64,000 bases of DNA from Bigelowiella natans CCMP2755 (lineage: Eukaryota; Protista; Cercozoa), in assembly GCA_000320545.1 (NCBI GenBank), contig ADNK01000035.1:1-64000 (forward strand). The letters run 5' to 3'. The notes under the pieces were generated by a model that saw nothing but the letters and a program-made list of their open reading frames with translations, ran no database searches and was not told where the DNA came from. A program made the position numbers and the translations under genes. This document shows, one piece after another, positions 2,837-63,301 of this stretch. Positions within the stretch are counted from its first letter, which is position 1, and every line of letters starts with the position of its first letter.

Positions 2837-3920
2837 CATGCAAGCCAGCAGGGCTGCGCCATTTGGCCATGTCGCAGAACCCATCATTGCCTTCAATGGA
2901 CAAGCCAAGCAAGACTCACGTGCGCACGTGTTGCACCAAGCTAGCAAGCTCTCATCCAACACGAAGCGGAAAAAGCCTGAAATCAAAATTGTGCAGCCAA
3001 GTTCCAGAGACCAGCAGGATTTGGATGATGGCACACTGGCTGTCATGGAGCATTGTGACTAGCAGCAACGATGTTTTTGTGTGAAGTGATGTTTGTTTCC
3101 AATGGTGATCTGCCAGAGATTCGTGTGGCAAGAGTGCAAGAATTCTCCACGCTGCTTCGCCAAATCGTGCTGATGTGAATCACACCTGCCATCTGCTCAA
3201 ATTTTCCATTTTTCACGCAATGAGAACAATGATGAAAAACTGCATTTCCAAAGTGTGACGAGACACTTGCAGTGTGCGAAATGCAGTGCATCACTTCTGT
3301 TCGGACAATGAACAATGAACAATGATGACAAACCACATTTCCAAAATGCAACAAGACATTTGCAGTGTGCGAAACGCAGTGCCTCGAGCTAAATCTAGCG
3401 AGGTCCAATTTTGGGCATGACGCGGAAATGGGATCGATCATCAAGTTTGAACAATGAACAATGAACAATGAACAAAGCGTTGATCAAAAACTACATGCGC
3501 CAGAACCACATGGGAGACAGGCATTTGCACGCAGCAGAGCCTCAACAACACTCGTTGCAAGGACTTGTCAGCACCCTGTTGGTGAAGAGACACAAAAAAT
3601 CAGCTGCAACCCATCAGAGGCACACTCCAAGGCTGCGTGAAGGGATGAGAACACCATGGCCACTCATCTGAAATGCCGGAGACGGAACAAGGGATGAAAT
3701 TGGCATGGATGCCGATTGATGGTGCCGTTGCAATGTGAATTGATTGGAACTAAAGCTGGCATCTTGGATGCCGAACAGCAGCAAAATTGTCAAGCAGGAC
3801 AATGGTTCGACGGAAAGCCCTGTTGAAGAAACAATGAAACAATGTCTTTCTTTCGTTCTTTCGGTGAACAAACGCAGAGCGACTGGAATGACGAACTAAC
3901 TGATCAACTAACAACAGTGG
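2601..3920. other. TpA-depleted tract (decayed repeat or relic sequence)
   Basis: By eye there are about 9 TA dinucleotides in 1.3 kb, all in CTA context, with a strong excess of TGCA/CATG/GCAC and short AATGAAC repeats near 3307 and 3452. Confidence 0.85.
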
Positions 3921-4663
3921 CTTTGTCTTGTAACGGACATCATTGCGAAATTTGGGCAACAATTTCTAGACTTTTAGGCCAACAAAATTTAGTCGTCATC
4001 AAAGGTGGTGTGAGACTTCTAAACTAGTAGAAACTCATCTCATTCAACTAGATCTACAGAAGTTGATAGCATGACATTTTGTCCATATTGGCTAACTATT
4101 GGTTTGCCAGTAAATGCATATTGTGGTCAAAAGGCGGTCAATATTTTACCTTGCGAAAACAAGAAGAAGAAGGAGAAGAAGAAGAAGAACAACAACAACA
4201 ACAACAACAACATGTCCGCCCTCAGCAAGAAGGGACAAAGCTATCGCTGCGGAGTCTACACGTAGGGGAGACCGTTCCTTCGTGAAGGTTTCTGCAAATG
4301 GCTATTTCCCGAAGGCATTCTTCGATGTTTTACACGGTGCAGCACGTTTGCTGCGGAGGTCTTAGATGAGCCCCAGGTGGCAACCCTCGACATGTCACAA
4401 CGCTCTGTTCTATGTGCAATTCCAACTGAACGATGCCGTTGATAATATTTATTGTTTACTTTATATCGTTTGGTAGAATATTCGTTTTCAATCCTGTTGG
4501 GGCAGGGATAGGACCTTCAGTGCCAATTTTCCTTCTGAATGCAGTTGTGCTGGCAGCTGGGGCGTCGTCTGCATCTTGGTAATAATTTTCACCATCTTTT
4601 TCGGTACAGTTTAATGAAATTACCTCATCAAAGTTATAATGCACCTCAAAACCAATTACCCAC

Positions 4664-7876: not shown

Positions 7877-10442
7877 ATGCCTCCCCTAGGAAGGAAAATC
7901 GCAGGTACATTTTAGAACTCAGAACGAATGTGGAAAATGGGTTCGTGCTTACTCGCATGCTGATGTTCCTATTTCAGGGCGGGTACGTGGCGGACCTGAT
8001 CCGATGGTTATCGCAATCTTAGTCGTCGCCACTTCTCATCTTCCATCAAATGGCCAGAAGCTTCATGCATCTTACCCAAACTCAAAGCTCTCATCTACCT
8101 GCCAACTAAATCGGCTTCGGGGGGGCAGTGGGAGTGTAGAAGACGCTCTCAGATCGGCACGAGCAGCCGCAGCGTCTTCATTAGCAAACGGTAATTCTGA
8201 TCACCAACCTATGGAGGCCACCTACTCAGGTAATCCAGCGTATTATTCTGGAACTCGTCTAGGAAATGCCCCAAGAAATTTCGACCAATCGGGGGGTGGG
8301 TATTCAGAGGCTCAAGCACAGAATCCCAGTTTTGCGAGTATGTTTGCAGCCCAGGCATTTGGCTCCCAAAACTACCAGATGCTTGGTGGATACCAGGAAC
8401 GCTCCAGAAACGCTTTCAATGAACGATCGTCACAGGAACGAATGGCTACTGGACACTCATTTTCATCAGAAAGATCGTGGAAGGACCGTGATGGGAAAAG
8501 TCAATCGGGGGGGGATATGATGAGAGGAAGAGGAAGGTATGGTGGGAATGGGGGTCGCGTTACTAGGCGCAATCGCAGTTTAGATGATCGGCGCAACGGC
8601 GGCCGGGATTCAGGGGGGAAATGGAACCATGGGGGCAGCTTCCGGGATAAAAGTGCAGCTGAAGGTCGAAACGCGGACTCTATGGACTGGAAAACAGGAA
8701 CACGCTATGGTTCTTCGTATCAACGGAGTTCTCACAGAGATTACGATGGTGCCGATGATCGCCGAACGGGTGGCCGATATCATCGAGAGCGTGGACGATT
8801 TGATAGATATGAAAGGGGGAACTACAACAGAGAATCGGATAGAGGTAGAGGGAGGAGACCTGAATTCGATGATTTCTTGGGAAGCTTCAATGATGCAGAT
8901 TTCACACAGAACAGTCTGCCGCAAATTGTACGCAACTTATACCACGAAGCACCAAGAGTCGCGCAAATGACTGAGCAGGAAAAGGATATGCTACTGAATG
9001 AAAATCGGATTGTTGTACGCACACCCCGAGGATTTTCGGGCGAAATTCCCAATCCGATTCCCGATTTCGAAAGCACAGGGTTACCCTTCGACATAGCCGA
9101 GAGGTGTCAAAAGAAAGGATTTAAGGCTCCAACTCCTATTCAGATGCAGTCGTGGCCGGTGGCCATGTCTGGGAAAGATCTTCTTGGATTAGCACAGACG
9201 GGATCTGGAAAGACCCTCGCATACGCATTACCTTCGATTGTGCACCTACGCGGACAACCTCAATACCCTGAGAATTATCCGAAAGGCCCGACAGTCTTGG
9301 TCCTGGCCCCCACAAGAGAATTAGCGCAACAGATTGAGAAAGAGTACAAGGATTTCGGGGCAAAGGCGCCTTCCTCACGATTTCTCTCGCGAGGCACGCC
9401 AACAGTCGCGGCAGTCTTCGGCGGCGCCCCCAGATACTACCAATCACGTGAGCTGAGACTAGGGACCGAGATATTAGTTGCCTGCCCAGGGAGATTACTT
9501 GACTTCATACAGAATAAGGAAGTGGGTCTGGCACGTGTCACGTATCTGGTGCTAGATGAGGCTGATAGAATGCTGGATATGGGATTCGAGCCCCAGATTC
9601 TAAAGATTCTTGGACAAGTAAGACCCGATCGCCAGGTGTTATTCTTCAGTGCAACATGGCCTAAGGAAGTGCAGTCGTTAGCCCGAAAGATCTTGAGAGA
9701 CCCCGTCACCATACAAATTGGGGACACATCGTTGAAGGCGTCTTTGGATGTAAAGCAAACTGTCCACTTTATAGACGAGTATGACAAGCCTCACCATATA
9801 TTGCGCATTCTCCAGGGACTCCAAATGGGAGTACGAGTGCTAGTGTTTGTGGAAACAAAGAGGACAGCAGAAGATGTCCTTCAAAATTTCGTCGCTGCGG
9901 GGATTTCTGCGGCCACGTTGCATGGAGATAAAAGCCAGCGTGAACGTAACCTTGCACTGAAGAATTTCCGATCAAACAGGATCTCGGTGTTGATTGCGTC
10001 AGATGTGGCTGCAAGGGGCCTAGATGTCAAGGGAATCAAAATTGTTATTAATTACGACATGCCAAAAGACATCGCAACCTATGTGCACCGGATTGGTAGG
10101 ACAGGCAGAGCAGGGGAAAGCGGTCTTGCAATATCTTTTATAACTCCAGAATATCGACTCACGGGCGACCTCAGTAGGATCTTCGAAGAGTCAGGCCAGC
10201 CAATTCCGCCTGGGCTGCAACGATACTTTCGCGGAGGATTTCCGTATACTGATATTACGCCAGAGCTTGAGATGGAATGGAAGCAAATCAAAGGCGATGA
10301 AATTCCATCAGGAGATGTGTACTCGAATAGTAGAAGGGGGGATTGGGGACGAGGATCACAATACTCGAGAGGCTATGGATATGATGCACCTGGTGGTAGG
10401 AGCCACACCAGCAGTAATTACGGGAGGTGGCATGGATCATGA
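7877..10442 (+). CDS. DEAD-box RNA helicase, DBP2/DDX5-like, with hydrophobic N-terminal leader and RG-rich region
   Basis: Motifs FKAPTPIQ, AQTGSGKT, PTRELAQQ, LDEADRMLDMGFEPQI, SAT and HRIGRTGRAG. A short first exon at 7877-7904 and a GT-AG intron at 7905-7977 are in frame with ORF 8004-10442. Confidence 0.95.
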
Positions 10443-18526: not shown

Positions 18527-20695
18527 TCATAAGAACCTAAATCTTTTGTCCAATTCCTGCCCTTCTTCTTGGTTCGAGGTACCCACGTATTCATGAGCAT
18601 ACATCACGCGTGGTCTCCGTAATCGAATCTAATATTTAGAGGGATCGAGATAATGCTTTATTATGATAAGCTATCGCTCGATGAAACAACTACGCAACGC
18701 GTGGCCTCGAAAGACTATTTATTTAATATTTACGCTTTATTCTCATTAAAAATATGATATGAATCATTGTTTCAAGAATAAAGTATCATCAGAGGTGTTA
18801 CATTTGAAGCATACCTGTGTGTGACTTTTAATATGAGACCAAGATTCATACTTGAAAGCCTTAAAGATTATGTTAAGCTTTTTTTTTTGGTTCAGAAAAA
18901 TTAAAATGAAATTCTTATTAACATGATCATTGATTGAATTAAATCTCAAGCTATGCATAGAAACCTGGAGAGCATGGTTCCATTTCAACGCCTTCCAGTA
19001 TGGAGAACGATCTCTGTACGAACCAAATCTGAAGGATAAAAACGATTGAGTGAAAAAATAATAACAACTTTATCGAAGGTTTCAATCGGATTATATAGAG
19101 TACCTAGGATGTACTGTCTGGGCGAAGTACTTCTTTCCTCTGCGTCGATATATTTCCCCCCCTACGTCACTTAAACGCGACCCAATACCCTGATCAATGG
19201 TTTTGGTGTAAGAGCTTGATGAAGCTATTTTTTCGATTAAAAGTTGGAATGTTGACCATTCCCTGCCACTCTGGGAGAACTACAGTTCTATGCGCCCTGT
19301 AGGCGGTATGAGCATTCGAATTTGATTCTGATGGATAATTTCTTGAATTATTCTTGTGTGGGATAACTGCCTGCATATTGTTAGAGTTGTTGTTAGCACT
19401 GGTATTATTGGTGGCAATATTGCATAATGCTACAGGCTATCCTCTTCCGCATAATCTTTCATTTATTTAGATTTTACATATTTTCAAGCATATCCCTTAA
19501 TACCAGAAATGCAATGGGCTGGTGTTTCTCCTGGCGCTTAATTTCTCCTCCTCCTCCTCCTCCTCCTCCTACTCCATACTGCCACCTAGTCTTCTCTTTC
19601 TTTTCTCCTCCTTCTTGATAAGGCCTGCTATGGCTCTTAAGATCACCGAGGTAGTACACCACATAGCATTCGGCGCGGGTAGAGAGAGCGGATGACTTAT
19701 AGTGATGCTGAGAGAAAATAGAGTTCCAAAGCCTGCTACAATTAAAAAAATCAAATACGGGTGGCTACATTGTAACAGGTCCTAACTACAAATTCAATTC
19801 TTTTTCAATTGTTCTCTTTCAAAATCAAACTCTAAGAAGTATGGCTAACATGAACAATAGCACCAATACACCGATAAAAATATATTTGACCGTGGAGTTG
19901 TCATTTCAAGACGGAAATGGAGGGTAGGAGGTGTTCCTTACAAGAATAGTATCGAAAACACACGAAAGTTAGTAGTGAACGATTGTTAGAGCAATAACAA
20001 ACCTAGTTGCAGATGGCATTCGTCAATTTTAATATTGACATTATTTCCTTCTGAGCTATCATTCCAAGGGATGGCTGAATTAGTGCCTTTACTACTTCTA
20101 GCATTTGGTCTATGAAATGTTTTCGAGCCTGTGTCATAAATCCAGTCAGGCCGAAGATGACCTTAAATCAAAACACAATTGAATCACCATCATCCTCATT
20201 GACATAAAAACTAATGGTTCTAAAATATACAACAGCTGAAAATGCTCACCACTTCCAATGCCAAAGATAAAAAAATAATGCAAATTAATTACATACAACA
20301 AAATGAGAGGAGACGTCGTGTTCTACTACCACTCGATAAAATTCCAGCGCCTACACAAGTCACGAGAAGGATGCCGTGATTGTTTGAATTCAAACGTCCA
20401 CACCTAACAGCTATTTCTCCCTTTCTTTTCTCAGAAATTGGTACGTGTGTTTTCAGTTCGAGTGGAAGAGAAGATGTGAATTTTGATTTACAGTCCCTAG
20501 ATTTGGCGCTTTCTAGGAAGAAATGCCTTGACAAATTGGAAGAAATAGCCTGAAAGAGGTTCAATCAATAATTCTTGCCCATCGTTTAATCATTTTTAGC
20601 AAAGAATAAAAATGATGATGTAAAAGATATTTGTGATAACCTGTAAGGTTCTTTGATCAAGATTCGAGCCAAACTCGTCAAAAACAGCTCCAGGA

Positions 20696-20733
<38 letters not shown>

Positions 20734-20779
20734 AAAACATACATATAATACCACTAAAGCAGTAATTACAACGTTTAGT

Positions 20780-20819
<40 letters not shown>

Positions 20820-21196
20820 TAATGGTTATGCATGATGCATGTGTGCATAGAGGCGGGTATTTCCTATAATAGTAATTGTAATAATAGTAATAATTAATGA
20901 TCAACGTTTCAAAAAAGTGGTTCTTCATACACTCCTTCAAGTTTTGCTATGGTTAATGATAAGAAAGGATGATGTATTTGATGTTGTTCTTCTTCTTCTT
21001 TCGTACAAGCACGAGTCTCGCGAGCGTGGCTCTTTCTTTCTCCGAATCACTCAGCTCATGAAATTTCTTTCCCCCTACAGCAAGAGGAAGCTCGACCTGA
21101 TCGAGGCAGTAAATTGGCCACCCATTATACAGAAACAGCAGCTAAAAAGATTACACACGAACACCTTCCTACACATGATATGTGATATTGTGTGTA

Positions 21197-21232
<36 letters not shown>

Positions 21233-22082
21233 ATAAGGTTGCATTGTTTTGGTATGTAAGGAACATCGCCAAAGTACGAACAAATAATTATATCTGATAT
21301 ATGTTATTTGTTGTGAAATTTTACGGCAGAAATCATTCGTTGGTTGAACATCTTTGAAAGTAATCAATCGTCTCGCATTGCCATAACAACAGTAAGAAAT
21401 ACCAGCGCAAAACTTCTTGTTGCATCTGGGGATAATAGTAGCAACATCAATAAATGATGTTTATCAATCAATTATAAAAAGATCAATCAGAATAAAGTCC
21501 ATGGTACGAGATTACTACCTTCAATGCTGTAAAAATGCTCCAAAACTTCAAGATGGGGGCACCATTCGACTTTTGAAGCACCGCCAAAATGATACTTTGC
21601 CTTCACACAATACATGTTTATTTACATAATGTTAAAGTTACGATTTTGGTGAGCAGATTTAGATAGAGATGATGATTGCTTACGCACGAGAACTGATTTA
21701 GAGGAGCCCGAAGGACCTGAGATGACTCCGAGATGGAAATTTCCAAGCACCTCTGCAGATGGAAAACTAGGAATCTGTGGGAAAATGACATTTTATATCA
21801 ATATATTTGATTCATGCTACATGCATGATTCATGTCTTACTGGTACGACATGCAACAGCACGCTCAGGAGACTACTCTGACCTTATGAAAATGGAGTCCA
21901 TTAAAGGGCAGATCGAATAACGCGTCAATTCCTAGAAATGAGAATCATGAACAGTAATATCAGATTATCACATGCATGATTTTAGTCATCATTCATCCAA
22001 TAATTCAAGCTGCTTTCAAACGTGATGAAAATTGACGCTCATTTACAGCAATATGAATAAAACCTTTAAAAATAATATATAC

Positions 22083-22125
<43 letters not shown>

Positions 22126-22128
22126 GTG

Positions 22129-22163
<35 letters not shown>

Positions 22164-25100
22164 GTAATATTTTACATATATGAAGTAGTTGTTTGAAGAA
22201 AAAAAAATAGTAGCTTTATCATCAGTAACTTGAACAACAAATCACCATATCTACAACATATCATCATCATCCACTTTGTATATAAACGCTTATTATCTCC
22301 AACACGATTCGTTATTGTTGGACAAGTTGTTATTATGTTTGCTAAATATATTCGATTCGATTCGTACCAGCCGTTACAGCGTCTGCCTGGACCCTTGAAA
22401 ATAGAACGACCTCCTCCTTCTCCTTCTTCCCATTTCCTTCTTGTTTCTTGATCTCTTGTTCATCTGCCTCTTTATTTTCTTCGTCGTCATCATCTTCTTT
22501 ATTATTGTTCTCTTCCTCCCTTTTCCTTTGCTTCATTACCTTGTTCCTGGGGCTGGATTCTTCTTCTTCGGCCAGTTGTTTCGTCCTCTCCCCTTCCCCT
22601 CCTCTCCTAAGCTCATTGATTCCCAGCTTATTTAGTAATGTGCTCGACGACGAGGAGGACACAAAAGAGAGTGAGGAGGTATCAACGTCGAACATCACAG
22701 GAATAGGTGTGACTGGCCTTGGATTGATTTCTACTACTGCTTGGATTTCCTCCGCGCTGCTGCTACTAATATTACTACTACAACGACTACTACGACTATT
22801 CTTATGGTGGGTTTGAGTCGCTGTTGTCCGAATCAGTACATCGGGCTGAAGGTAATCGGCAATAGATGGCTCGCTACAAGCCACGAAGATGCAGGATGGA
22901 AGAAGATGATGATGATGATGATGAAGAGGAAGACGATTCTCTAGAATAATAACAATAATCATAATAATTATGATAATGAGAGAGTGATTCTTGTTGAATT
23001 ACATGTCATAATGTGGTAGTATTCGGGGCAGCAAGTCAATGGAAAACAGAATTACTTTCAGTACGATGATGTAAGCGCTGACGGATTTCACGCCTTGATC
23101 TACGTATGTAGCCTGAAAGAGCTGCTGCAACGCAACGAGCAGAATCAGGGTCCAAATGGTGTGTAAAGTTGTCCAATACAAGAGGATGCCCTCGAAAAGA
23201 GGTTTGCGATGTGAATGCTTGAAGCTGCCTTTAAAATAAAGAAATAAAAAGAAAAGATCCACAAGATGGTGTTGTTATGTTAATTATATTAGTGTGCCTA
23301 AAGTTGTCAAAATGCAGGAAGGAATAGACAAGACAGGACTTTGGTTATTCATTAGCCATACTACTACTACTTACTACTACTACTACTACTACTACTACAC
23401 TACTACTCTACCACCACTATAACTAACTCAGCTAGCAAATCTATTCCTAGGAAGGCAATAATAATACTGATCCTAACTCGGCCAGCAAACTTTTTTTTCC
23501 CCTATACTTATAGTAAGCATGTGCCTTGCAAGTTGTGCTCTGTATTTTTGACCAGTCGACAAGACATGATATGGAGAACACCATGCCGGTATTGAATTGA
23601 TGCCGACACAACTCATCCATCTACGGAAGAAGGAGAATGATAACGATAGTGAAGATGATAGTGATGATGATAATGATGATGATTAGAAAATACTTGCTTG
23701 TTTCACACATTTCATAGAGCAAGCACATTAAGTATCACGATTAGCTTAGATATTTATTGTCACTCACTTAATGGCCTCACTCTCAGGCGATGATAGTTTA
23801 TCATGTTTTCCAAATTGAGAGATGATGGGCAGTCTCGAGTCCCATTTTATGCAATTTTGTGAGTTAATGCACGAACAGCAAGGTCGTGGGGGAAATACAG
23901 TAGCACGTTGTCGTTGTTGTACTTTTTCCTTCTCTTGTCTCCTTTCAAAAACGTCATCAAAATGCCATATCCGGACAAGATGAGCTAAGAGACTCGATTT
24001 TCCTGAGGACGATGGACCTGTAATCATAAATACCGGGCACTGTCTCCTTTTCTTTCGAGGAGGATGTTTGCCGCTGCTGCTACTACTCTCCTTGCCTCCT
24101 GCATCTTCATCTTCTTCATCGATCTTTTTCTCATCGATTGGATTTTGGAAGCAAGACAGTATTTGACTCTCGAAATCATCCCATAAATCGTCTTTGTCGT
24201 TCTTATTTTTAAGCTGCCCATTGCCAACAACCGTACCAAGTTCTGAAGATACAGAGGAGCTATTGGATTGCCGCTTTGATGCACTTAAGCTAATCTTGCG
24301 GAAAAATTTACAGATACTACGAATGCTCTCTAGTGGGTTTACTGGTAGAAGAGATGTCTTCTGCGTTCTAATTGTTGTCGATGATGACGACCATGGTTGG
24401 TGGGGAGGTGGAGAACGATTAGTGGGGAGGCTTGAGGGCCGTCGGGATGATAAACGGACTACCGTGTTGCAACAACTTTCAGTCAGTTCCGAGAGGAGAT
24501 GAGCGTTGGGAAAGCGAGATTTGAGATTTATGGGTTTTCTTTGAGGCTCATTAATTGTCCTTACATGGAGGTACGGGTGAAGAATCCACTGAAAAATAAT
24601 GTTGCGCTTAGATTCAGTGCTTGTTTGTGGTGCGGCGCTTGTGTTGGCGCGCTCTCTATTACACGCTGTTTTCTGTTCTAGGTCGCAGATTTAATAAGAA
24701 TGTTAGATTGGTACACGGTGAAATTGGTGCTCCGTGTTGTCAAAAGCAGCAATGCACGATATGTGCCCATTAATGCATGTCCCGAGTTTACACGGCTTCC
24801 CTACAAATTGATGGAAGTCACACCGCGCACACAAGAGGTACTTCCGAACGTGTTAAATATATGAGTAAAAACTAGGGGATTACCTTTCAAATGGGGCCCC
24901 GTCATCGACCATCTTACGTCTATTGGGCCATATTCTCCTCCATACCTCTCAATGAACCGATCAAAACACTCCGAATGCATCACATAGGAGCATCCACTGT
25001 CGCACTAAAAAGCATCAATAGCATCAAATTTACTTCATTTGCGTCCAATTTTCCTATTTACTTCTATTAGACCATCATAACCTCGACGAGCACGCTCTGT

Positions 25101-25457
25101 GTCTGCCACTGGTTGGTGAGGAGTGACAGGAAACACTCGGCACAACAACCCCCTTTAACACCAGCCCTCACATCATTACAGTTTTCAGCCTTTACAAAAC
25201 TCGTTCTTCCAGCTCTGCAAAATTGCCATTTTCGAGTAGCTAGGCGAATGAGGAGGTTGTTAATATCCACCTTCAAGTCACCGATTCCTATGTGTGTCGC
25301 AAAGAAATTCTGCATTAATTATTACGGGACAACGAATGACCTATCTCCAAGTTATTAGTTTACGTGTGTCGTGGGTACCCATGCGCAGTACGTCAAGACG
25401 ACGAAGCAGCTTGGCCGCCACATCCTTTTTCTTTTTTTTCTTCTTCTTCATCATCAT
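18527..25457 (-). CDS. C4HC3 zinc finger + tandem ABC ATPase domains + GNAT (Mom-like) acyltransferase fusion protein, about 20 exons
   Basis: Manually spliced: [12 protein letters not shown] (NLS-like); CAEC..LVE|CDSGCSYVMHSEC..PCKLGTC; ABC1 TGPSSSGKSS, VGINSIPAWCSPYHVLSTGQKYRAQLAR, LVLDNFTHHLD, YLQPDVL; ABC2 SGPSGSSKSVL, LSDSEKERATLAR, VFDEFGSNLD, LRPDWIYDT; GNAT LWNSIFSQHHYKSSALSTRAECY, RAHRTVVLPEWQGM|GIGSRLSD, YFAQTVHPR|FGSYRDRSPYW, RVMYAHEYVG. Confidence 0.85.
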
Positions 25458-28680: not shown

Positions 28681-30100
28681 TTTGTGCATGTCAATGTGTG
28701 CACGACTGTCACGCGTACATGCTGCGCGCTTGCATCTGACATGCTTGCTGCATGCCACACGCAGGGCATCGGCAAAAGCATGGACCCGAATCTAGCTTTG
28801 GACTCACTGCATGCATTTGCAACCATGACACTAGCTGCATGGACTGGACAAAAAGCACATGCAGATCGATGTGGATCCACAGTGCATGTTGATGTGCACT
28901 GCTGCACACATTGATTGTGATGCATTCGTCATGCTTGTGCCGCACATCGCAAAAAGATGGACGTGCGTTGCAGGACTCAAGAATGAACAACTCCACATCG
29001 CATCCATGCCAGTTGGCCATGGACATGCAGTGCGGTGCCGCGCTAGCGAATGCCAGCATGTGTGCGCACGGCATCGATCCACGCGGGCCATTTTGGATCC
29101 TCATGGAGTCCAGCTAGTGGCTGGCGCCAACGCAGTGTGTGTCATCCATGCGTGAGTGCACGCTGCTGCACTTGCGGAACAAAATCACTGCGATCGTCAC
29201 AACCATTCATTGATTCGCAGCACGTGGAGGCATGTCCAGATGTGTCCTGCGCGAACAAACTTTGAAGTGAACTTCACAGCATCATTGCACGATCAATTTG
29301 CAATTGCCCATCTCTGCGCCGCGCTTGCGCCCGCAACACGTCGTGCAACATTGGAACAATCAACGGAAAAAATGACCTTTTGATGAACACCATTGAACAT
29401 CAAAAAATGCACCAGCTAGCCAGTCCAGCAGTGTCAATCCCCATTGACACCCAGGATGCAGGATCATCCAAAATCACCGGCGCCGTCGCCGGTGTCCCAA
29501 TTCCTGCCCAGTCTCAACAATTGCGAATGCCAGAACTCCGTCTGAAACATCACCCCACTGGGCAACACCAACTGACGCTGTCTTGCCCCACCCCACCTCG
29601 CACCGACACCTCCTCAGGGTCGTTGCTGTCCTTCGTCCTCTTCGCATCTCTGCCTCCGCTTCCTTTCAGTCTGCCGCCATTTTCTGCCAATGCGGAGGAA
29701 TGCTTGTTCCCCAACTGCAATCCCCTCCGTTCAATTGCCTCTCTGTTGCTCTCCCAACAAAGTCAACACCCTGTCGTGTCAACTGCCAACTTGCTGCCCC
29801 CTGTCGCAGCATCCCTTGTTGACCACATTGCTGCCGGTTGTCGCAGCACCCCTTGTCAACTGACTTGCTGCCGGTTGTCGCAGCAACACCCATTAGCACT
29901 CAACCACCAGGCGCCAATGCGCGCCGCTTCATGTGCAACCACACAATTAGCAACCAATGCCACGCTCTTCGTCGTTTGAAGATTTCCAAGACGACATTTT
30001 GGGTTCAACATGGAGTGGTAACAATGATCAATGCAAATGCACTTGCAAATGCATGACATTGAAGAACAACATCTACCCAAACAAATGAATTTCTTCGAAT
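28430..30100. other. TpA-depleted tract between convergent genes (possibly a decayed gene or repeat)
   Basis: Between 28720 and 30010 I see only 7 TA dinucleotides, all as CTAG or TTAG. There are short internal duplications (TTGCTGCCGGTTGTCGCAGCA at ~29828 and ~29865). Confidence 0.88.
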
Positions 30101-30105
30101 GATGA

Positions 30106-33100
30106 TCATGCAAGACTTCCAATGTAGGAGATAACACGCTGACCTACTGACATTTTCTTCGCCTCTCCTTTTGTCATTTTCTTCGCTGTGTGCACTGCTT
30201 CCCGGTAGACACTTCTCAAGATCATTCTCATTGCATGCATAAAAAATATCAGATTAATGACAAACACTACAAGGCTTGCCAATAATTTTACATCGTCATC
30301 GGAAAAATATAGAAAACTGCCGAAAAAGAAAGTAAAAAAAGAAGTAAATAGGCTCCAATACTCCAAACTGTTGCATTCTTCCAACTCAAATGGTCGAAGA
30401 CGCTGCTGGATTACAATGCAGAGAACAATGAGAAGAATTGCAAGCTGAGTCTGGGCTTGGTTGTTGACAACGAAAACCGATATTGCGACGATGAGAACTT
30501 TTCTTAGAAGAACTAGAATTTCGAAGAAGAAAAAATCATGCTTGTAACCATCGTAGAGCATATGTAGATGCATGGATCGGCGCCGATTTATGTATGCTTT
30601 CTCATAGGATATGCTTCTCATACTTGTCCATGCATTTGGAAGGTCGGATTTGAAATGATAAAGAATGTTAATCAAGAAAAGAGGGAACCCTATCACATAC
30701 ACTGCCAGCATGGGGACACCAAGTCCTATTGACCAACTGAGGTGCGGCGACTGGAAACATCTTTGACTCATTTCTGGTAAAAACCTGTAAGAGTCGTTAC
30801 TTGATGTAAGCGACTCGCAGTTAAAGAGGTTGAACGCCTGCTCCACCAATGTTGGATAGAGCATAAAAGTAAACGAGAGATTCGATGCGTTGTATATGGT
30901 GCGTAATTTCTTTCTTTTCAAAATTGAAATTCGCTTTCTATCAACAACAATACTCTGTCTACGGCTTGGTTCTAGTTCAGACGATACGACTTGGGGATCG
31001 ATCCCAGAGAGCTCCGTCCGTTTGTTCGTGTCGCTTAGGTTGTTACTAGCATCCACAATTTCTTGCGACTTTTTCGTTTCAATTTTAGTAGTTTGCATTA
31101 AGCTAGATGCCTTTGCTTCATCTGACTTTACTGTTTCAATGCTATTTCTCTGACTCATTTCTTTTGCAGCGCTCTTTCTGGCTTCCAACAGGTGGTGGAG
31201 GGAATTGGGGTTGGGCTGATAACGTGATTGCGTGATACTGTTTCGGCTCATTATCGAGCCCATATCCGATTTATTCTCCTCTTCTTTCTTTTCCTGAATC
31301 TTCGAAGGTGCTATCACATTAGGGTGAGCGACGTTCCTTCGACATATGAATATGGAAAGGGTTATGAGCGATAAGAAGGGGATAACAAAAGGAAGGAGAG
31401 CAATTATGAGCGCGTTGATATAGTACGATGGAACGGAAGTTTCGGAAGGGAGTGCACAATCTATGTTCATCAAATTGTTCAGAGAGGCGGATATCAGGGC
31501 CTCAGCTTCTAAAAAGCCACGCACAAACCCAGGCCACGCATAGTTGAATAAAGAGGCAACCGTGTTGAATTGCAAAAAGTTTAAGAGAATCTTCATAAGA
31601 ATTGAGGCGTCAGTGTCGAGACGACCCACTTCACCCTTTTCATGTGCCCTTGCAATCTTTTCAGCGTCTGAAATATTAACGTAAGTAATGATGAACGCAA
31701 TTATAAATATTAGAATCCAGGTGCCAACGATTCTAAATATGACGAGTCCGGTGCCGCCTGAACACTGTGAGCAATCATACGTATCCACTCGCTGATAATC
31801 ATCCTGGCATTCGGTACATAACACACCTTTGTACCCATCTCTGCAGTTATCACCATCTCGTTCCCCACCAGAACATGCTTCGTTCCTACATTCCACAAAT
31901 TTCAGTGTATTCTGACTTTCCCACGGACTAAACCAGTAGCCTTCGTCGACGTTCACCTCATTCACCGTTGTGTTGAGACCATCACAAACTCCACCCTCCG
32001 GGCAATCTATGCAATCCACAGGCTGTCTATTGTCGTCAAAATTTTCCGGAATTGCATAAAAGTCGTTGAGACATTGGCATTGGTTTGTTCCTAGAGAAAC
32101 AGCATTAGTTGCGCACCTTACACAAGTTACTGAGAACCTATCAGGGACTTCATTCTGATCACAGAGCTCACATTTGCTGCTACCTTCACCACCCGTTATA
32201 CCTCCCACGCACTCAGTACAAATTGCAGCACCTTGTGCCACCCCAAATCTCCCTGCTGCGCAAGGAATACAAACAGTAGATGTGTTCGGTGGGAAGGGTT
32301 GGTATTGACCAACTCCACAATCTAAGCAGCCTGGCCCATTCGGATCGATGATCTGTCCCACTCGACATGGGATAACCTCAAGTGTCGAGTCTGTCGTCTC
32401 CCGCTCAACTACTCTTTTAACACCTTCCTCAAAAAAAAATTCCGATCGCGCTCGGACACGATAAGCATATGTAGAGTTCCGGCGTCCTCTAAATATTGTG
32501 TTTGGCTGAGATGTCACGCTACTTGGACAAGCGCGACCAAAGCAAGCGCGACCATCGTATGTAACCACGGACCCTAATTCAAACGTCCCTTCCACATTAT
32601 TTATTGCTTCAGCCAATAATGTCAATTCCACCTCTCCTATCACGTATTCACCGAAGAAATCAGTGATGTTTACAAATATCTGGTCATCAATAAAACTGTT
32701 TGATTCGAGCTCGAGATCTTGTCCTGACCATGATAAGCTGTGGGGTGCACTAGCGATATCCTTTCCATGCAAAGCAGTATTATTCCGAAATTCGACAAAT
32801 CCGTCTCCAACACCGAGAGGTAAAACTCCACCCTCTAAAAATATGAGTGGTACAGAGAAAACAGGCCTTGAGTCCACAGAATCAAAGTAGATGGCTCCTC
32901 CTGCCTCGGCAGAATTTGCTACAAAGGTGCTGCCCTTGCCAATTGTCAGATTTACTTCCGGGTTAGTGTTGATGAAAATTAAAGCGCCGCCTTTGTCAGA
33001 ATTTCCTGTCTGGCTGGATGGGTTCACGACTGCATTCTCAGTGAAAACACTGTCAGTCATTGAAAGTGATGTAGCTTTATCTAGTGCAATGGCTCCACCT

Positions 33101-36100
33101 TGGAGGCCAGCAGAATTTTTGGTCAAGGTTGAACGTGAAATATTCAACGAAGAGAGATAGACGCTAATTGCTCCCCCTTTGAGATCCGCCGTGTTTTCCA
33201 AAAACTCGCAGCTAAAGATTCCAATATGTGAAACTCCCTCAGCACGAATCGCACCACCTAGCCCAGGTGCTGAATTTTCGGAAAAATTACTACCAGTGAT
33301 GTAGACAGTAGAGTTAACAATTTCTATTGCACCACCGTTTCCTGTCTCAACAGAATTTGAAGAGAAAACGGATTCTGTGATCATCACGGGAACTTCACTA
33401 TTAATGCAAAGGACAGCACCACCAACATCAGCGATGTTGTTTCGGAAATTGAGTTGTATATTTTGAGGGCACTGAATTCAGTCGTAAAGATAGATTTGCC
33501 AGCATTTTGTTGCATTGTAGAGTTAGCAACGAACGCTGAAGATGATTCTCGAAGTAAAATTATCGCGCCTGTGGCTGTGCTTCTCAATGTGTTTGCCTTA
33601 AAGAAGGCCCTAGAAGAAATCAAACTCGAATTCCCGCTCAGATCAATAGCATTGGATTCACATGAACAGTTGGTGATATTTGAGTTTATAAGCATCACTT
33701 TTGAGTAATCAAACTGCTGAATGAGACCAACATCAGCATCGGCTGTTAAGCTGTCTACGTAAGAAGAAGTGATGTTAAATGATGCAGAGTCACTCAACAA
33801 GGCCAAAGCAATGTTCTCTGTGGCTTTAGCATTCAAGACTCTTGAACCAATGAGAGCAAGTTTTGCGTTCTGTACTAGTGTTGCAAATGAAGCACTCTCG
33901 GCAGTGAATTCAGAGAAAGAACACCCAGTGGCTTTGACTTTGGAAGTAATCATGGCACTGAAAATTGCCGCTGTCTTTGTATTGACATCGCGAACATTAG
34001 CTCTATCCATAAAGATATTCCCTCCAAACACAAAAGCAAAACCTCCTGATACAGCGCTGATAGAATAAAACTGAGATTCAAATATCTCTATAAATGCTCC
34101 TGAACGGACATAAAATACACCACCATCAGCCAAGACCCTAACATTGGAAACATTTGAGCCGAAGATTTCCAGAACAGAATTTGATTCACTAACTGCCACG
34201 CCTCCAAATCCTTGTGCATGTATATTATTGACGGTAACCCCCGATAAGATCCCATAAGAATTTATGGAGAGGTGTAGCAGTCCGGCATCAACAGTTTCTA
34301 TATCACCGACGACGGTATCGTTCAAGTGTAATACGGTTGAGTCGTCGGCAAAAAAAGAACCATCACGAGTATTGATATCAGAAATTCTTGAATTTACAAC
34401 TGTAACGACCGTGTTGCGATCACAGTAGACGACACCCCCAAAATCAGACGCTAATTCTTTGAAAAGGGACCCATTTATAGATACTACTCCAGTGGATGAA
34501 CCACGTGTGAGGGCTTTTGTGATCCAAATACACCCTCCTTTCGATTTTGAATTAGACCCAACGAAATACGATGAAAATATCCTAGCTCCAGCGGTTACAA
34601 TATCGCCTCCATTCTCTCTTCCTACGTTGCTCTGGAACCTACATCCCCTTATGTCAAGCTCCAAAGCAAATAGAGCTCCTCCCATATCTGCAATATTTTC
34701 CTTGAAGATACAGTTGGTTAGTCTAACTGCACCGGAGGATGATATAGCACCTCCTCTTGATGAAACCACCGAATCGCCAACAAGAGCCCGGTAATCCTCA
34801 CTGCTATCTGTGATGGCCATATTTTTTGTGAAGTTGCATGCGTTAGCCTCAAAAATCCCATTCCTTGAGTTGCTCTGAATTGCTCCAGACGATAGTCCGG
34901 AATTGTTACTGAATGTCATCCCTTGTAATATAATAAATTGTCTATTCGATGGAGAACTTGCAAGAGTTGATTGTAATGTGATAGTCGGAGAAATCGAGCC
35001 TGTAATTTGCGAATTTATCATGTAACCTGTCCCTATGTTGTCCGATAATGTAAGCACTGGCAACTTGATTTCTTGGAAATAAGAATTGATCATGCGAATA
35101 GAATACTTTTCGGATTGAAGTGACGCAAACCCACATTCACTAGAAATGACGCGAACGTTTTGAACCCGAAGGAAACCGTCTACAACTTGATCCGGTATGA
35201 CTAGAAGAGATGATGCTGATGAACTCCCCAGTTCAATTACTCGTGTTATTCCACTAACAGATACGGTTGACATAGATACATTGGAGAGCCTACAGGAAAC
35301 CTGAATCAATCCTGGACCCACTCTGGTGTCCATAACTATTACGTCCGACATTACTATGTGACAACTTGTAAGTGCGGTTCTCGGAATCCAAACAGCAACT
35401 AAGCCACTTGAGGAGCTACTGCTTGCTGTAGAAGCTCCTTCAACGAAGTACAGCTGCGCGTTGTTGACGAAGACATGTGATAGGGAGATCTTTGGTCCAA
35501 TGTATTCGTTAAGAGATTGTGTTGTCGGGACTATGGCCATTCGCAACACACCAAAATTAGAATCGGTAATTTGAATATTCTCTATGCCAACAGAAGACAA
35601 TAAATTGTCTTCTACCAATATCGCTGCTTGGTAGGTTAAACGACTAGAACGCACATTATTTATAGTCAATCCATTGACAGTGATTGTGTTCGAAGACCCT
35701 TGAACCATATATCCCGGAAGATAAAAGACACCCGCTTCCAGGATTGACCCCTCCAACACTAGATTGGAGATTTCGAGAGGGGTACCAACAGTTTTCAGTG
35801 TCATAGCAGCCCTCCTTACATTCGCTCCTATGACTAAAAGATTCACAAAATATCTTGTATCCATAACTGTAAGATTGGCGAACTGCCCTTCAAATGCAGC
35901 AACCCCAGACACAACAGGAACTGTTCATAGTAATAAAAGATGGACAATGGTTTATAAATTATGCTCATGGTATATAAAGCAACAGAGGAACTAAGGGGAA
36001 TTTATATTAGTAACAGTACCTTGATCACCATCTTCTTCTGTAAATGACCGCACAATACCAGCAGAACTAACTGTAGGACTACCAGTTGGACGGAGCGGCT

Positions 36101-39100
36101 GTTTCTCATATGTGGGACTACCCGTGGGAGCACGTGTTTCCAGTGTGGGGTAGAAGAATGGATCCCCAGGTGTAGACTCGGAGATGTGTATATTTTTAAT
36201 AAATACTTCGTCCTTGCCCGATAAGGAAGAGTTAACATATAACAAAGAAGCGATGTGGTAGAATCGAGCCTGACGAACTCGCAGAGCCTCGAATTTTATT
36301 TTTGAGGGAAGGATGCCACCATTGAGATTGATGTCAACGAACGCAAACGAATGATATCTAAAACTACCATCTGGATTTACGCAGTAGTTTGACTTATCAA
36401 AGCATGCTGAGGAACAGTTGCAGTTATTCACTGGGACTTTCAAGTTTATAGGTCCAAATTGTTCTGCGCCATAAACTAGGTCTACAGTCTGCTCGGAAGG
36501 GTTACCTATAAACTCAAAATCAAGGCCATCGCCTTCGAGCTTGAACCCACCTTCCATTACACGATGATTTTCAAAGTTTGAATTGACGACGCGAATTTTC
36601 ATGCCACTCCCAATGCCTCTTACGAAATAGCGCGCGACTGGGCGACCTTGAATGTTAGAAGTGACCTGAATGTTCTCGAGAGTTAGTGAGGCTCCATCAC
36701 CAATTAGACGTATACCATAGAAGAAATTCAACATACGTGCATTTCGAATCACAAGATTGTCCAACTTTAAATCTAGGCAATTAAAATCTCTCTGCTGATT
36801 TCCCAAACTAAAATCTAACGTGAGACCCTCTATTATCAATCCGAATCCGGGCTGTAGCTCTGCAGGTACTCTATTATAAGCTACCCAGGGATATGTAGCA
36901 TTCTGGTCGACTACGTCTTGAAAACATGTGAGAACGACGCTTGCAGGGCCCCGAACAGTATTCATAGCTGTATCGTGAAGGGGAACATTGCGACCAAACG
37001 AAGGATCTGACGGCAAATAATCAAATGGGCCGCCCAACTGGTATGGCAGCAATGCCTCTGTAAGCTCGTGCACAACAATTGATGCCGATGGAGTTCCAGT
37101 AGGTGGGGGGGATGGTGCCACAGTGGAATCAGATGAAGCTAGAAAACTCCAACCTAGACCATTTCGACTTGAATCAGTGGAGAATATCATCGTGAATCCT
37201 CCAGATTGGGAAATAATATCGGATGGCAAGACATCTCCAGTCAAAACAAAATCCGCATCCATGATGGGAAAACTGTTGAATAACCCGTCTCGAACATATA
37301 GAAAATCGTAACCCCATTCGAGGTCAAAAATACTGAAAGATACCTAAAATAGTAATGAGACCAACAATGAAAACATATCGGGGAAACCCATGAAACCACA
37401 TAGTTAAAGATAAACAGACCTTAGAGGAAGATACTTGAAAGTAGCAAAAAACATTGTCAAAGTACAAAGCACCAGAAGTTTTATAGATCTGGGAGCTTGT
37501 ATTGAAATTAACTGACATATTAGTGCAAATTGAAGCCAAGTGCGTGGGAGAGGTAGTTGGCGATGAAGTTGGTACTGCCTCATCGACTGTTGCATTTATT
37601 GATATACGGGAGATGAATTCACCATCGGATTGTATCGAAAATTCACTGAACGGAAATGCATTTTGAGCTGAAAGGAACTTAGTTACTTTCAATGGTAACC
37701 CACAGAATTCAGCCTCTAAATCTGACAATCGAGTGTATACGTTTGTAATACTTGTCTCTGAGCCACGATAGCCTAAAACTCCTATGTGATCTCCTTTATT
37801 GATACGAACGTTTACAGGGAGTGCGATTTCACCAGACTGTTCCCCAGCACTTTGCCACAGAATTTCCACTTCTCGTGTGATATCAGTTGTTTCCTGAAAC
37901 GGAACACTTGAGCGAACAAGCATTCCATATTGATTTTCCTTGAATGATCCATGTACAAAAAGAGTTGTGATAATAACTTGACATGGGGATTGAAAGGCAT
38001 AGCCACGGGGTCTACCAAAGAAGGATCCAGTAGGGAGACCCATAGAGATATTAGCTGGCGAACGTTGTTTTTCCCTGCAGAGTTGGCTGGACTGATTGTA
38101 CAAGACTGGATTCTGGCTGAAACATTCTTCAGTTGCAGAGCACAACAAAGTTTCGTTGAAACAATTTATCTTCCCATTAAAACCAGGGTCATCACATACA
38201 CATCCTGTGGTCACTGACCCAACCACTGCCCAGTTCCGATCGTTCGTTTTACATGGCACGCTGGACTCATCCACAGTTCCATCCCACATTGCCCCAATGT
38301 AATATTTCCCATTAAAACTGGGATTCAAACCAGAAAAGTCAGGATCGTTCCTATGAGAAAAGAAACGACCATATTCTCCTGGTGGCATTACAAATCTAGT
38401 TAATCCTACCAAATTGTCGTCTGCACTCGAAATGACAGTGTCTTTGCTTATGTACCACTTAATCGTAAGGTTGGCAGACGCTGTTCCTACTGCCGTGAAA
38501 CTGATGTATGGAAAATATTCCTGACCCTCCTCTACAACAAAGACATCGTTCTGCCCGATTAACGCTGTATTATCACTCAGTGATATCCCAGCAAGAACGT
38601 ACTGGGTGTTGTCAAAATCGTTACCAAAATCGAACTGATATGGAACTATTTGACAGTAGTCAGCTGGAGGTGGAGCCCATGGCCCCTCAATGTTGGCCGT
38701 TGCCGCATTAACTTCTGCTTGAAATGCTGGTGTAATCCGGGTAAAATATTGAACACATCCTGTTTCCCCCGGCTGCCCTCCGCTCCATACTCCAACAACT
38801 TTAATATTTCCACTCTGAGATACAAAAACTGGACCCCCGTCCATTCCAGGGAACATCCACGCATTTTGAGTAATCAACAAGTTCTCAGACGAATTCGGAT
38901 GGGATAAGGCTATGACATTTAACCCAAACAATGGATTTTGGAACTGAGTTGGGCTTCTCTGGGAGATACTAACATTGTTTCCAGGATATCCGAAGGTTAG
39001 ATAAGAAGGAAAATCTTCGAAACTCATCTCCCAGGAACTTAGTAAGCTACCACCCACTCTTCGATCTATTTTACATACTTGAATGTCAATACTTGGGTCT

Positions 39101-40110
39101 CCTGGAACAGAGGCATTTTGGTTACAAACAGTACTAGAATCATAGGAACTGTCATAAACACAAGTCCCAGTAAGAAATGCTGAACCATAAAGTGCATACT
39201 CAAGTTGTCTGCCAAAATTCCCCACTTCACCCTCTGGGATGTAGTAATAACCACATGCAATTCTTACTGTGTGTGCTTCGCCTGAATAAGGAAACCAGTA
39301 TTATGAGTCAAAACATTCTTGCATAAAACAAAATGTATCAGAAAATTAATCCATCAACCTTGGCAAGGATCATATGTACAATGTCGTGCAGTAAGGAAAT
39401 GATAGTCTCCCACTAATGAACCGGAGCACTGTCTTGGCCGTGGGATTCCATCGAAGTAAGCTAATACACGACAGCCAGGTCTAAAGAGACTTTCTTGTGA
39501 AAAAAAGGCCTCGAACGCACTCATGGTTAAGCTTGGAAATTGGCTTCTGGGAATGCTTAAATTATTGTACGAGGCACAATTATTGTTGGTATTGCCTTCT
39601 ATGGCACCATTGGAAGAAGAAAAGGGTTCAGCGTTGATATTTTCTTGGGAAAAGGAATCGAATGCTGCCGTTTCTCCATTTTCATCTTCCATCTGCAAGT
39701 GGACTGTGGATTGTGCTTCATACTGCAGGTTTATTTTTTGAATTGGAACATAATGATCACGCAATCGATCGTGGATTTTGCGAGTTCCTATCTGCATTCT
39801 TCCAGGAAATAGAACACCGAAAGATGCATCATTTTCTTCCGGAAATAGCATATAGGCTGCATTTTTTTGAGGTGGAGACGATATCTCTCCAAACAAGTCT
39901 GTAGCCACGGATATTGCCATCTATCCCATAATAAAGGAATGTGATAAGAGATAAATTCATGTAATACTAGTCATATTTGAAATAAGGTAAATTTAGATAA
40001 CATCACATAATATGAACAAAGAATGCCGAAATTATCTACACCATAACAGTGACGGCCGTTCCACAAATGAATGCATTTATTCTTGTGCAAGATTTTCTTC
40101 CCGCAGCCAT
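30106..40110 (-). CDS. Very large surface/receptor-like protein: signal peptide, trypsin-like (pseudo)protease, Ig-like, CUB, beta-helix (GGAI) repeats, Cys-rich region, multi-TM C-terminus; apparent frameshift near 33450
   Basis: CSGSLVGDYHFLTARHC...PGMDGGPV; CUB FDLEWGYDFLYVRDG..FSTDSSRNGLGW; many FxxNxAxxxGGAI repeats; CxxC repeats; TM block KILLNFLQ...FFFEILVLLRKVLIV...RPF. Covers ORFs 39354-39920, 37324-39225, 35991-37262, 33384-35912 and 30106-33387. Confidence 0.85.
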
Positions 40111-44100: not shown

Positions 44101-44550
44101 GTTATGTCGACGTTTCAGCAGGGCAGCTGCACTCAGTTGCAGTGACTAAGAGCGGTAAGGTGTTTGCTTGGGGTTCCGGGGATGATTTGCAGCTTGGGAC
44201 GGCGGAGGAAAAAGAGGAGGAAATTCCTGTGCAGCTTAGGGGTGCGAATCTGAGAGGTAGCAAACGGTGGTGTAGTATAGCAATAGTAGTGGTGGTAGTA
44301 CTGGTACTTGTATCAGTTGTTGAAGAAGAAGTATCTGTGTGCTACTTCAAACCTAGAAAATGAGTGCATGTATGAATATAGATCATGCACTTATATGTAG
44401 TAGCGTGTGTATGTATGTATGACAATAGAAATGATAAAAATGTGTGTGAAATATGTGTGAATATGTGTGTTTAGGGTTGGCGTCACGGAACATTCCCGAG
44501 CGAAAGGCAGTCGCGGTTGGTTGCGGTTTTCAGCACACTGCATTACTTGC
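41141..44550 (+). repeat. Apparently identical 1452-bp direct repeat (41141-42592 = 43099-44550)
   Basis: The two 406-aa ORF translations are identical, as is the intron sequence. The offset is 1958 bp. Confidence 0.95.
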
Positions 44551-62955: not shown

Positions 62956-63301
62956 GCTATCCCTTCTACCAGTATTTAGTGTCCCTAGAAACTCATTCAA
63001 TTCTATTCGTAATTGCTATTCAAGACCCAAGCTGTTGAACAACCAACTATGATCACAGATCCTTAATGCCACAGATAATCCTCATCATCATGACGATTGC
63101 AGCCATTTCCCGAGATTTGTTGTCTCATTCATTGACAGCTAAAACCCATGTCTCATGTGACAAAATGCCCAGCATTTTTGTGCCATCATTTGTCAATTTA
63201 ACTGCAAATTCTGGACGGAGTTCAACCCAAGTGAGGGAGGGTTGCCACATGGCTTCCCCTCGAAATCCGAATTCGCCGATGCGGCGCGCGATGTGGTGAT
63301 A

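Follow-up and report, generated by a model that had tools for sequence, protein, structure and literature searches.

A spliced and expressed gene of Bigelowiella natans joins a C4HC3 zinc finger and twin ABC domains to the GNAT of a phage and prokaryotic family

A eukaryotic member of the phage and prokaryotic ABC-GNAT family

The gene described here lies within the first 64,000 nucleotides of contig ADNK01000035.1 of the alga Bigelowiella natans CCMP2755 (assembly GCA_000320545.1; this whole stretch is referred to as the window), where it occupies the minus strand from position 25457 to position 18527 as a single spliced gene with 20 introns (19 GT-AG and one GC-AG). Its product of ~1,160–1,190 residues comprises, from the N- to the C-terminus, a C4HC3 zinc finger, the basic tract PPRKKRR, an ATP-binding cassette (ABC) domain (ABC1), an acidic low-complexity spacer, a second ABC domain (ABC2) and a GNAT domain. 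We consider it almost certain that this gene, which is single-copy, expressed and nuclear, has its origin in the phage and prokaryotic ABC-ATPase-GNAT family (phrog_11143) and was remodeled into a multidomain eukaryotic form.

A GNAT coupled to an ABC ATPase, with predicted DNA base acylation, has been noted in Tenacibaculum phage pT24 (PMC7824862, after Iyer et al.), and the pT24 ORFs carry the same motifs as the window gene. A query derived from pT24 matched at least 7,928 proteins (3,913 in another search), with thousands of ~380 residues that consist of an ABC and a GNAT domain. In GTDB, copies came from flavobacteria, planctomycetes, SAR202 and Endomicrobia; the family gene was present on at least 594 IMG/VR contigs, and the ESM Atlas clusters of the family were mostly Uroviricota. 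One ESM Atlas cluster (731 aa) was labeled 88% Eukaryota with Chlorophyta as its commonest phylum; this cluster label is a lead that green algae may have relatives of the ABC-GNAT gene, which would be relevant for a host with a green-algal endosymbiont. In the pT24 record itself (LC168164, region 32066–33238) two ORFs (32477–33238 and 32066–32407), both annotated "ABC transporter ATP-binding," take the place of one ABC-GNAT gene. They are ~70 nt apart, and the part near GNAT strand beta-4 is absent, which may reflect a frameshift, a sequencing error or an interrupted gene.

Our searches with the algal gene were run on single exons or six-frame segments. Profile hidden Markov models (HMMs) of the family, built from database relatives, were searched against the stop-free segments of all six frames of the window (2,625 in total). 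The nine that scored best all fell within this one gene and were collinear with the profile, so that the matches are far above chance. They follow the profile in three stretches, ABC1 at positions 40–170, ABC2 at positions 46–135 and the GNAT at positions 222–365. The best exon was exon D (the exons that follow exon 2 are lettered A to T), with E-values of 6.5e-10 to 5e-11 and a genome-wide E-value of 2.7e-7. Exon C gave a weak match (positions 40–71), exon E matched at E 0.0016–0.0045 (positions 131–175), exons H (E 5e-4 to 0.003) and K (E 0.04–0.3) were collinear, and exons P, Q, R and T matched collinearly over positions 222–365. A family profile search of the 91-Mb genome returned this as the one significant locus. 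In PHROGs, the only match of exon D was phrog_11143 ("unknown function"; E 2.3e-10), which exon Q also matched (E 0.0028); the same entry was the sole or best PHROG match for exons D, Q, H and P, the matches of exons C, H and P being weak but in register.

The motifs agree with this assignment. The algal ABC domains share with the phage proteins Walker A, the stretch GxSSxPxW..PY..LSxGE/Q, Walker B (DE[FY]TSxxD) and the PDW linker, with some catalytic residues substituted, and the GNAT shares W..F..HHY, RxVVxP[DE]xQGxGxG, HP, W and EYxG; of the GNAT invariants in the family alignment, only one has changed in the alga, from Asp to Glu. The sequence-only reading of the window had taken this motif set as a mark of the phage and prokaryotic ABC-ATPase-GNAT fusions, and the HMM and phrog_11143 matches bear this out. 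The algal protein departs from the usual family form, one ABC and one GNAT in ~360–400 residues, by having two ABC domains per GNAT in a chain of ~1,160–1,190 residues and by adding an N-terminal C4HC3 finger, a tract resembling a nuclear localization signal (NLS), a low-complexity spacer, 20 introns and degenerate ATP sites.

Several less specific searches were negative. Pfam and NCBIfam returned only generic P-loop noise on the raw ORF pieces of the gene; phmmer with a 308-residue open piece (exon C plus flank, mostly low-complexity linker) gave no matches among 1.84 billion representatives; and tblastn with the last 110 residues of the exon C piece found nothing in phages. A literature search for Bigelowiella GNAT or ABC proteins, or for the ABC-GNAT family (COG2401, phrog_11143), found no relevant work.

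Gene structure and transcripts

A three-frame reading of the minus strand from 26000 to 18000 recovered every motif that the sequence-only reading had listed. Transcripts were mapped on the segment 19095–25094, using Logan contig runs from three studies and one raw RNA run. Twenty public runs contained 34–50% of the sampled words of the gene stretch, as expected for the spliced mRNA of a gene that is half intronic. Fourteen splice joints on the minus strand (13 GT-AG and one GC-AG once their positional ambiguity is taken into account) were listed identically in contig sets X1, X2 and X6, and three more introns (23621–23767, 22941–23055, and 20698–21006), which fall where the mapping had skipped repeats, were derived by contig arithmetic, each with one GT-AG solution. 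Loose ends of contigs gave two further joins, between exons 2 and A (intron 25005–25081) and between exons R and S (intron 19029–19103), and the S/T intron (18629–18964) was deduced from its GT-AG ends and the reading frame. With these joints the frame is open over 21 exons and 1,162 codons, ending at the stop at 18527 (in-script check of joint continuity). The introns range from 66 to 436 nt, with a median of 120, and are more AT-rich than the exons, several of which are micro-exons of 23–57 nt.

A single contig spans finger exon A to GNAT exon P in two contig sets (2,873 nt, X2 record 5; 2,874 nt, X6 record 6), and another continues from the same exon P past the stop, the break between the contigs being a (GGA)n run within exon P. 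Since there is only one genomic locus, the spliced contigs represent RNA and not a retrocopy. The proposal that these fragments form one transcript, and not separate genes, is therefore upheld by RNA: spliced contigs from three studies, a contig spanning finger to GNAT, and an open frame together identify one spliced and expressed gene. The exon boundaries first proposed needed correction, in that the large exon begins at 24588 and not at ~24690, and exon B is 24800–24715. Bacterial or phage contamination, or an artifact of assembly or annotation, would fit with the nearest relatives being viral and bacterial, and is at odds with twenty spliceosomal introns that have matching spliced transcripts, with the low identity to the prokaryotic profile and with the eukaryotic neighbors on the same contig (DEAD-box, RCC1, C2H2); the RNA splice joints rule it out, and we give it a vanishingly small probability.

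The sole intron that is not GT-AG (GC-AG, 23229–23524, 296 nt) separates the ABC1 signature exon from the Walker B exon. Intron 25005–25081 is kept in some contigs (X1 record 3, depth 93; X6 record 7, depth 10 versus 35 spliced), and as its retention introduces a stop within the zinc finger, an isoform that lacks an intact finger may exist. In the raw RNA-seq run X21, six molecules end at 22323, in the intron of 436 nt that separates exon F from exon G; a small transcript, a repeat or mispriming could account for this pile-up.

The zinc finger

Candidate exon 1 (25364–25457, minus strand; sequence reading) starts at an ATG at 25457, has possible donors after 25379 or 25364, and would supply a poly-lysine start (MMMK8, 25457–25425) as the candidate N-terminus; an alternative ATG is at 25315. 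Exon 2 (25082–25287, 5' boundary deduced) carries the first cysteine pair of the finger (CAEC, 25144–25133), and a loose end of the X2 and X6 contigs joins its position 25082 to 25004, the start of exon A. The C4HC3 finger (24754–25147) is thus divided among exons 2, A (25004–24884) and B (24800–24715), whose joints are RNA-supported, and reads C-x2-C-x17-C-x3-C-x4-H-x2-C-x30-C-x4-C on these joints (CAEC-x17-CDSGC-x4-HSEC-x30-CKLGTC, 25144–24775), with the presence and spacing that had been claimed for it.

The order and spacing of the Cys4-His-Cys3 ligands agree with those of the PHD finger (PF00628) and the Nse1-type RING-like finger (PF08746) up to H-x2-C, whereas the last ligand pair is C-x4-C in the algal finger and C-x2-C in those domains. 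The sole Pfam match of exon A was zf-RING-like (PF08746; E 0.025, 15.2 bits versus a cut-off of 26.6), in a scan of single exons with the finger split over three. This match, weak and below the cut-off, points to a possible PHD- or RING-like finger. Fingers with such a pattern of cysteines and histidine are typical of chromatin proteins.

The ABC domains and their ATP sites

All exons of ABC1, ABC2 and the GNAT are on the minus strand. Exon C (23768–24588) encodes a Ser/Pro-rich linker, the NLS-like PPRKKRR (24063–24043) and the Walker A motif of ABC1 (GPSSSGKS, 24018–23995). Exon D (23525–23620), which precedes the GC-AG intron, encodes the family-specific GINSIPAW..PY and the ABC1 signature LSTGQKYRAQLA, with LSTGQ at 23562–23548. 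Exon E (23056–23228) carries the Walker B and D-loop sequence LVLDNFTHHLD (LVLDNF, 23182–23165), in which the catalytic Glu is replaced by Asn. Exon F (22368–22940), placed from contig pieces and a unique GT-AG solution and giving only low-complexity noise in Pfam, completes ABC1 (with YLQPDV, and with CSE where the H-loop would have CH) and adds a Ser-rich and acidic low-complexity spacer of ~150 residues. ABC2 (20003–21931) is encoded by exons G–J (21931–21882, 21774–21688, 21600–21519, and 21425–21403) and K–N (21096–21007, 20697–20641, 20549–20330, and 20161–20003), with joints from transcript contigs. Its motifs are a degenerate Walker A (GPSGSSKS, 21717–21694), the signature LSDSEKER (LSDSE, 21054–21040), Walker B (VFDEFG, 20685–20668) and RPDW (20153–20142), with the H-loop His missing.

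In ABC1, Walker A and the signature are canonical, and D-N replaces D-E after Walker B. ABC2 has D-E, but its Walker A reads S-K where G-K is usual, and its signature is LSDSE; the H-loop His, which is invariant in the family, is lost from both. Judged by sequence, both ABC domains are derived from the ABC-GNAT family, because both bear its family-specific features. In a full-length model of a family protein the ABC domain is nearest to transporter-type nucleotide-binding domains (NBDs; MsbA, Atm1, HlyB, and MJ0796). A transporter was considered and rejected, as no exon has a membrane-spanning segment although the NBD fold is transporter-type: when scanned exon by exon, no 19-residue window reached transmembrane-level hydropathy (maximum KD19 = 1.16). 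The description of the protein as two soluble ABC domains with an intact GNAT is thus sound, there being no membrane segments and the GNAT invariants being kept.

ABC1 and ABC2 would probably form an intramolecular head-to-tail ATP sandwich, standing in for the homodimer that the phage proteins of 360–400 residues are expected to make. One defect would fall in every composite ATP site of such a sandwich: ABC1 contributes the Walker B D-N, and ABC2 the Walker A S-K and the signature LSDSE. With these defects and with both H-loop histidines lost, the probable role of ATP is that of a slow switch or clamp and not of a fast motor. The soluble twin-ABC proteins ABCE1, ABCF and UvrA likewise have two NBDs per chain, no membrane domain and, presumably, a macromolecule as substrate. 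They are not orthologs; the algal ABC domains descend from the ABC-GNAT family and share their chain with an acyltransferase.

The GNAT domain is neither Mom-like nor TmcA-like

The GNAT (18527–19936) is encoded by exons O–T (19936–19891, 19732–19504, 19370–19257, 19189–19104, 19028–18965, and 18628–18527) and ends at the stop at 18527; its joints are RNA-supported apart from the S/T intron noted above. Its motifs include WNSIFSQHHY (19728–19699), RTVVLPEWQGM/GIGS (19289–19178, split by an intron at the slash), TVHP, SPYW and HEYVG. The acyl-CoA pyrophosphate loop QGMGIG spans the joint between exons Q and R.

An AlphaFold model of the family GNAT has the canonical GNAT fold (pLDDT 85.7), and its best solved neighbors, by Foldseek and an exhaustive VIA search, are 1y9k, RimI, PA4794, Naa50 and SpeG (Z 14.4–11.8), with Z 14 to 1y9k and 5isv. 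Three diverse family members match Acetyltransf_1 (PF00583), Acetyltransf_7 (PF13508) and Acetyltransf_10 in Pfam. By its fold and its motif A acyl-CoA loop (Q/R-x-x-G-x-G/A), the domain belongs to the GNAT superfamily.

The sequence-only reading had called the domain Mom-like, after the adenine-modifying enzyme of phage Mu, and this label does not hold. While Mu Mom itself matches PF25680 with an E-value of 2.1e-75, that profile had no match at E ≤ 1 for three family members and none for the window exons, hhalign of the family alignment against Mom gave a probability of 0.9%, and the Mom structure 8bv8 was not among the top 49 Foldseek or top 50 VIA neighbors of the family GNAT model. Mom and the ABC-GNAT family do have in common the GNAT superfamily, a phage origin and DNA base modification, which is known for Mom and predicted for the ABC-GNAT family. 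In contrast, Mom has no ATPase domain and shows no detectable sequence or profile similarity to the family; it reportedly uses charged tRNA (PMC13219725), whereas the acyl-CoA loop is kept in the ABC-GNAT family. That the algal protein is a member of the Mom family, whose hallmark is the carbamoylmethylation of adenine at N6, is very improbable. TmcA and NAT10, with which a structural comparison had also been proposed, were likewise not in the top 50 structural neighbors, the nearest being generic GNATs, and there was no Pfam match to the TmcA GNAT family.

The gene neighborhood in phages

Clustering of neighboring genes covered 76 viral loci of the family gene. The gene for a protein of ~188 residues was on the same strand in 62 of the 76 and immediately upstream of the family gene in 52, and its stop often overlaps the start of the family gene. 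This neighbor is a ParB N-terminal domain (ParB_N; PF02195, 30 bits versus a cut-off of 26.3; also phrog_620), and it matches positions 33–150 of the 633 of phrog_498 ("DNA methyltransferase"), which we infer may be a ParB-methyltransferase fusion. Downstream of the family gene are a helix-turn-helix gene resembling the small terminase (terS), then the large terminase (terL) and portal genes. At the IMG/VR loci the family gene is often 0.3–2.5 kb from the end of the viral contig, together with ParB_N and terminases, and this placement suggests that it adjoins the packaging start of these phage genomes. Pfam searches on several bacterial neighbors of the family gene were uninformative.

Experiments on thymine dioxygenases that act on phage DNA have shown that ParB-like partners activate these enzymes, and the partners co-occur with terminases (PMC13229309). 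The phage relatives of the algal gene have the same operon grammar as these dioxygenases and phrog_498, with ParB_N upstream and terminases near, but differ in the catalytic domain, which is a GNAT with an ABC. By analogy, the phage neighborhood supports, and falls short of proving, an action of the family on DNA. At the algal locus there is no ParB_N upstream or terminase downstream, and a ParB-like profile had no match in the algal genome, an empty result that is weak evidence.

Proposed function and alternatives

As the acyl-CoA loop QGMGIG and nearly all GNAT invariants are kept, the domain is predicted to still transfer an acyl group. For its substrate a nucleic-acid base is the likeliest candidate, most likely in DNA or chromatin, and by analogy with the phage genes acylation of DNA is our leading hypothesis, which we hold tentatively. 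The hypothesis draws on the phage homologs, which are translationally coupled to a ParB_N protein beside the DNA-packaging genes, in a slot otherwise held by DNA methyltransferases, on the activation of DNA thymine dioxygenases by ParB_N partners, and on the published prediction that the ABC-GNAT family acylates a DNA base (PMC7824862); in the alga, the C4HC3 finger and the basic NLS-like tracts may have taken over nuclear import and targeting in ParB's place. The more specific proposal, a nucleus-encoded eukaryotic writer of an acylated DNA base (e.g., N4-acetyl-dC or N6-acyl-dA) that arose from a phage DNA-protection system and was retargeted by a zinc finger, is unlikely as it stands.

Several points weigh against a DNA substrate. 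We know of no biochemical datum for any member of the ABC-GNAT family, and the case for DNA rests on a phage gene neighborhood that is absent in the alga. The nearest characterized structures are protein and small-molecule N-acetyltransferases (RimI, Naa50, SpeG, and PA4794), and there is no specific similarity to the GNAT of Mom or of TmcA/NAT10. A RING-like ligase or a histone reader is an equally good reading of the finger and would point to a protein substrate, and the degenerate ATP sites could belong to a decaying or repurposed ATPase. Finally, the N-terminus is a candidate and nuclear localization is putative, and the intron-retaining isoform would truncate the finger.

Of the other substrates, chromatin or another protein has the most in its favor. 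The protein would then be an acetyltransferase of lysines or N-termini, with an ATP-gated regulator in its paired ABC domains and a PHD reader or RING-like module in its finger, and both the chromatin-typical finger pattern, with zf-RING-like as the sole Pfam match of exon A, and the placement of the family in Acetyltransf_1, _7 and _10 are compatible with this. Its closest folds, RimI, Naa50/Naa10/Naa80, HP0935 and PA4794 (Z 12–14), include protein acetyltransferases, but the similarity is at the level of the superfamily only (8–16% identity), and we know of no protein acetyltransferase that needs an ABC ATPase. The phage relatives, moreover, are flanked by ParB_N and terminase genes, as is typical of functions directed at DNA. 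We view a protein substrate as somewhat unlikely. An RNA base would be the substrate if the protein were analogous to TmcA/NAT10/Kre33, which make ac4C in tRNA and rRNA (for ac4C of RNA by NAT10/Kre33, see a JBC 2024 review). The logic is the same, a nucleotide-hydrolyzing domain with a GNAT that acts on a nucleic-acid base, and the acyl-CoA loop is intact. Both halves differ, however: the ATPase is a transporter-type ABC and not the helicase-type module of TmcA, and the GNAT is of another family, given the Pfam and structural-neighbor results above. With a phage context of DNA packaging as well, acetylation of RNA seems quite unlikely.

It is also conceivable that the protein acylates a small molecule or has decayed catalytically into a scaffold with a non-enzymatic role. 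Substitutions in both composite ATP sites (D-N for D-E, S-K for G-K, LSDSE, and no H-loop His), the long low-complexity insert between the ABC domains and the many nearest GNAT folds that act on small molecules would all be in line with this. We nevertheless judge it improbable, because the GNAT invariants are almost fully kept, the ORF is unbroken over its 21 exons and its expression is seen in at least three studies, and degenerate ATP sites are common among working asymmetric ABC proteins. DNA acylation remains the reading that we favor for the substrate.

Other features of the window

TpA is depleted in kilobase tracts of the window (29001–30000, 3001–4000, and 63001–64000, with observed/expected ratios of 0.10, 0.15, and 0.17, respectively, versus 0.75 for the whole window). 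The ABC-GNAT gene is not TpA-depleted (0.71–0.93), and no link between the gene and TpA depletion was found; that an acylated DNA base underlies the TpA-depleted tracts of the genome is hardly credible.

An intronless ORF of 812 aa for a DEAD-box protein (DDX5/DBP2-like) occupies 8004–10442. With gaps excluded it is ~98% identical to the EukProt model jgi/Bigna1/57006, which places the window in the nuclear genome of B. natans or a very near strain; the model appears to splice out ~57 residues for which the genomic frame is open. At 41185–42405 and 43143–44363, two tandem ORFs, each of 406 aa, have identical Pfam scores for an RCC1-like domain, as if they had been duplicated in tandem recently. 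A series of very long ORFs on the minus strand at 30106–39225 (1,093, 842, 423, and 633 aa) probably makes up a single giant gene; Pfam gave no signal in it other than Chlamydia PMP-type repeats, which lie in the 1,093-aa piece (30106–33387).

Significance

What is new here is the architecture, a finger with twin ABC domains and a GNAT in a eukaryote; the phage family is known but uncharacterized, and the algal gene is real and expressed. The ABC-GNAT family is very large and has a conserved slot between ParB_N and terminase genes in phage genomes, and its function is unlisted in PHROGs. An expressed, intron-rich eukaryotic copy with an intact acyl-CoA site and an added chromatin-type finger shows that selection has maintained the module away from the arms race of phages. 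If its substrate is protein or RNA, the gene would still be a clean example of domestication, of modest interest. If the substrate is DNA, however, it would be the first identified eukaryotic DNA acyltransferase and a handle on what a phage family of more than 8,000 proteins does, and it would join the TET/JBP, 6mA and 4mC enzymes as a eukaryotic borrowing of a phage or bacterial DNA modifier.

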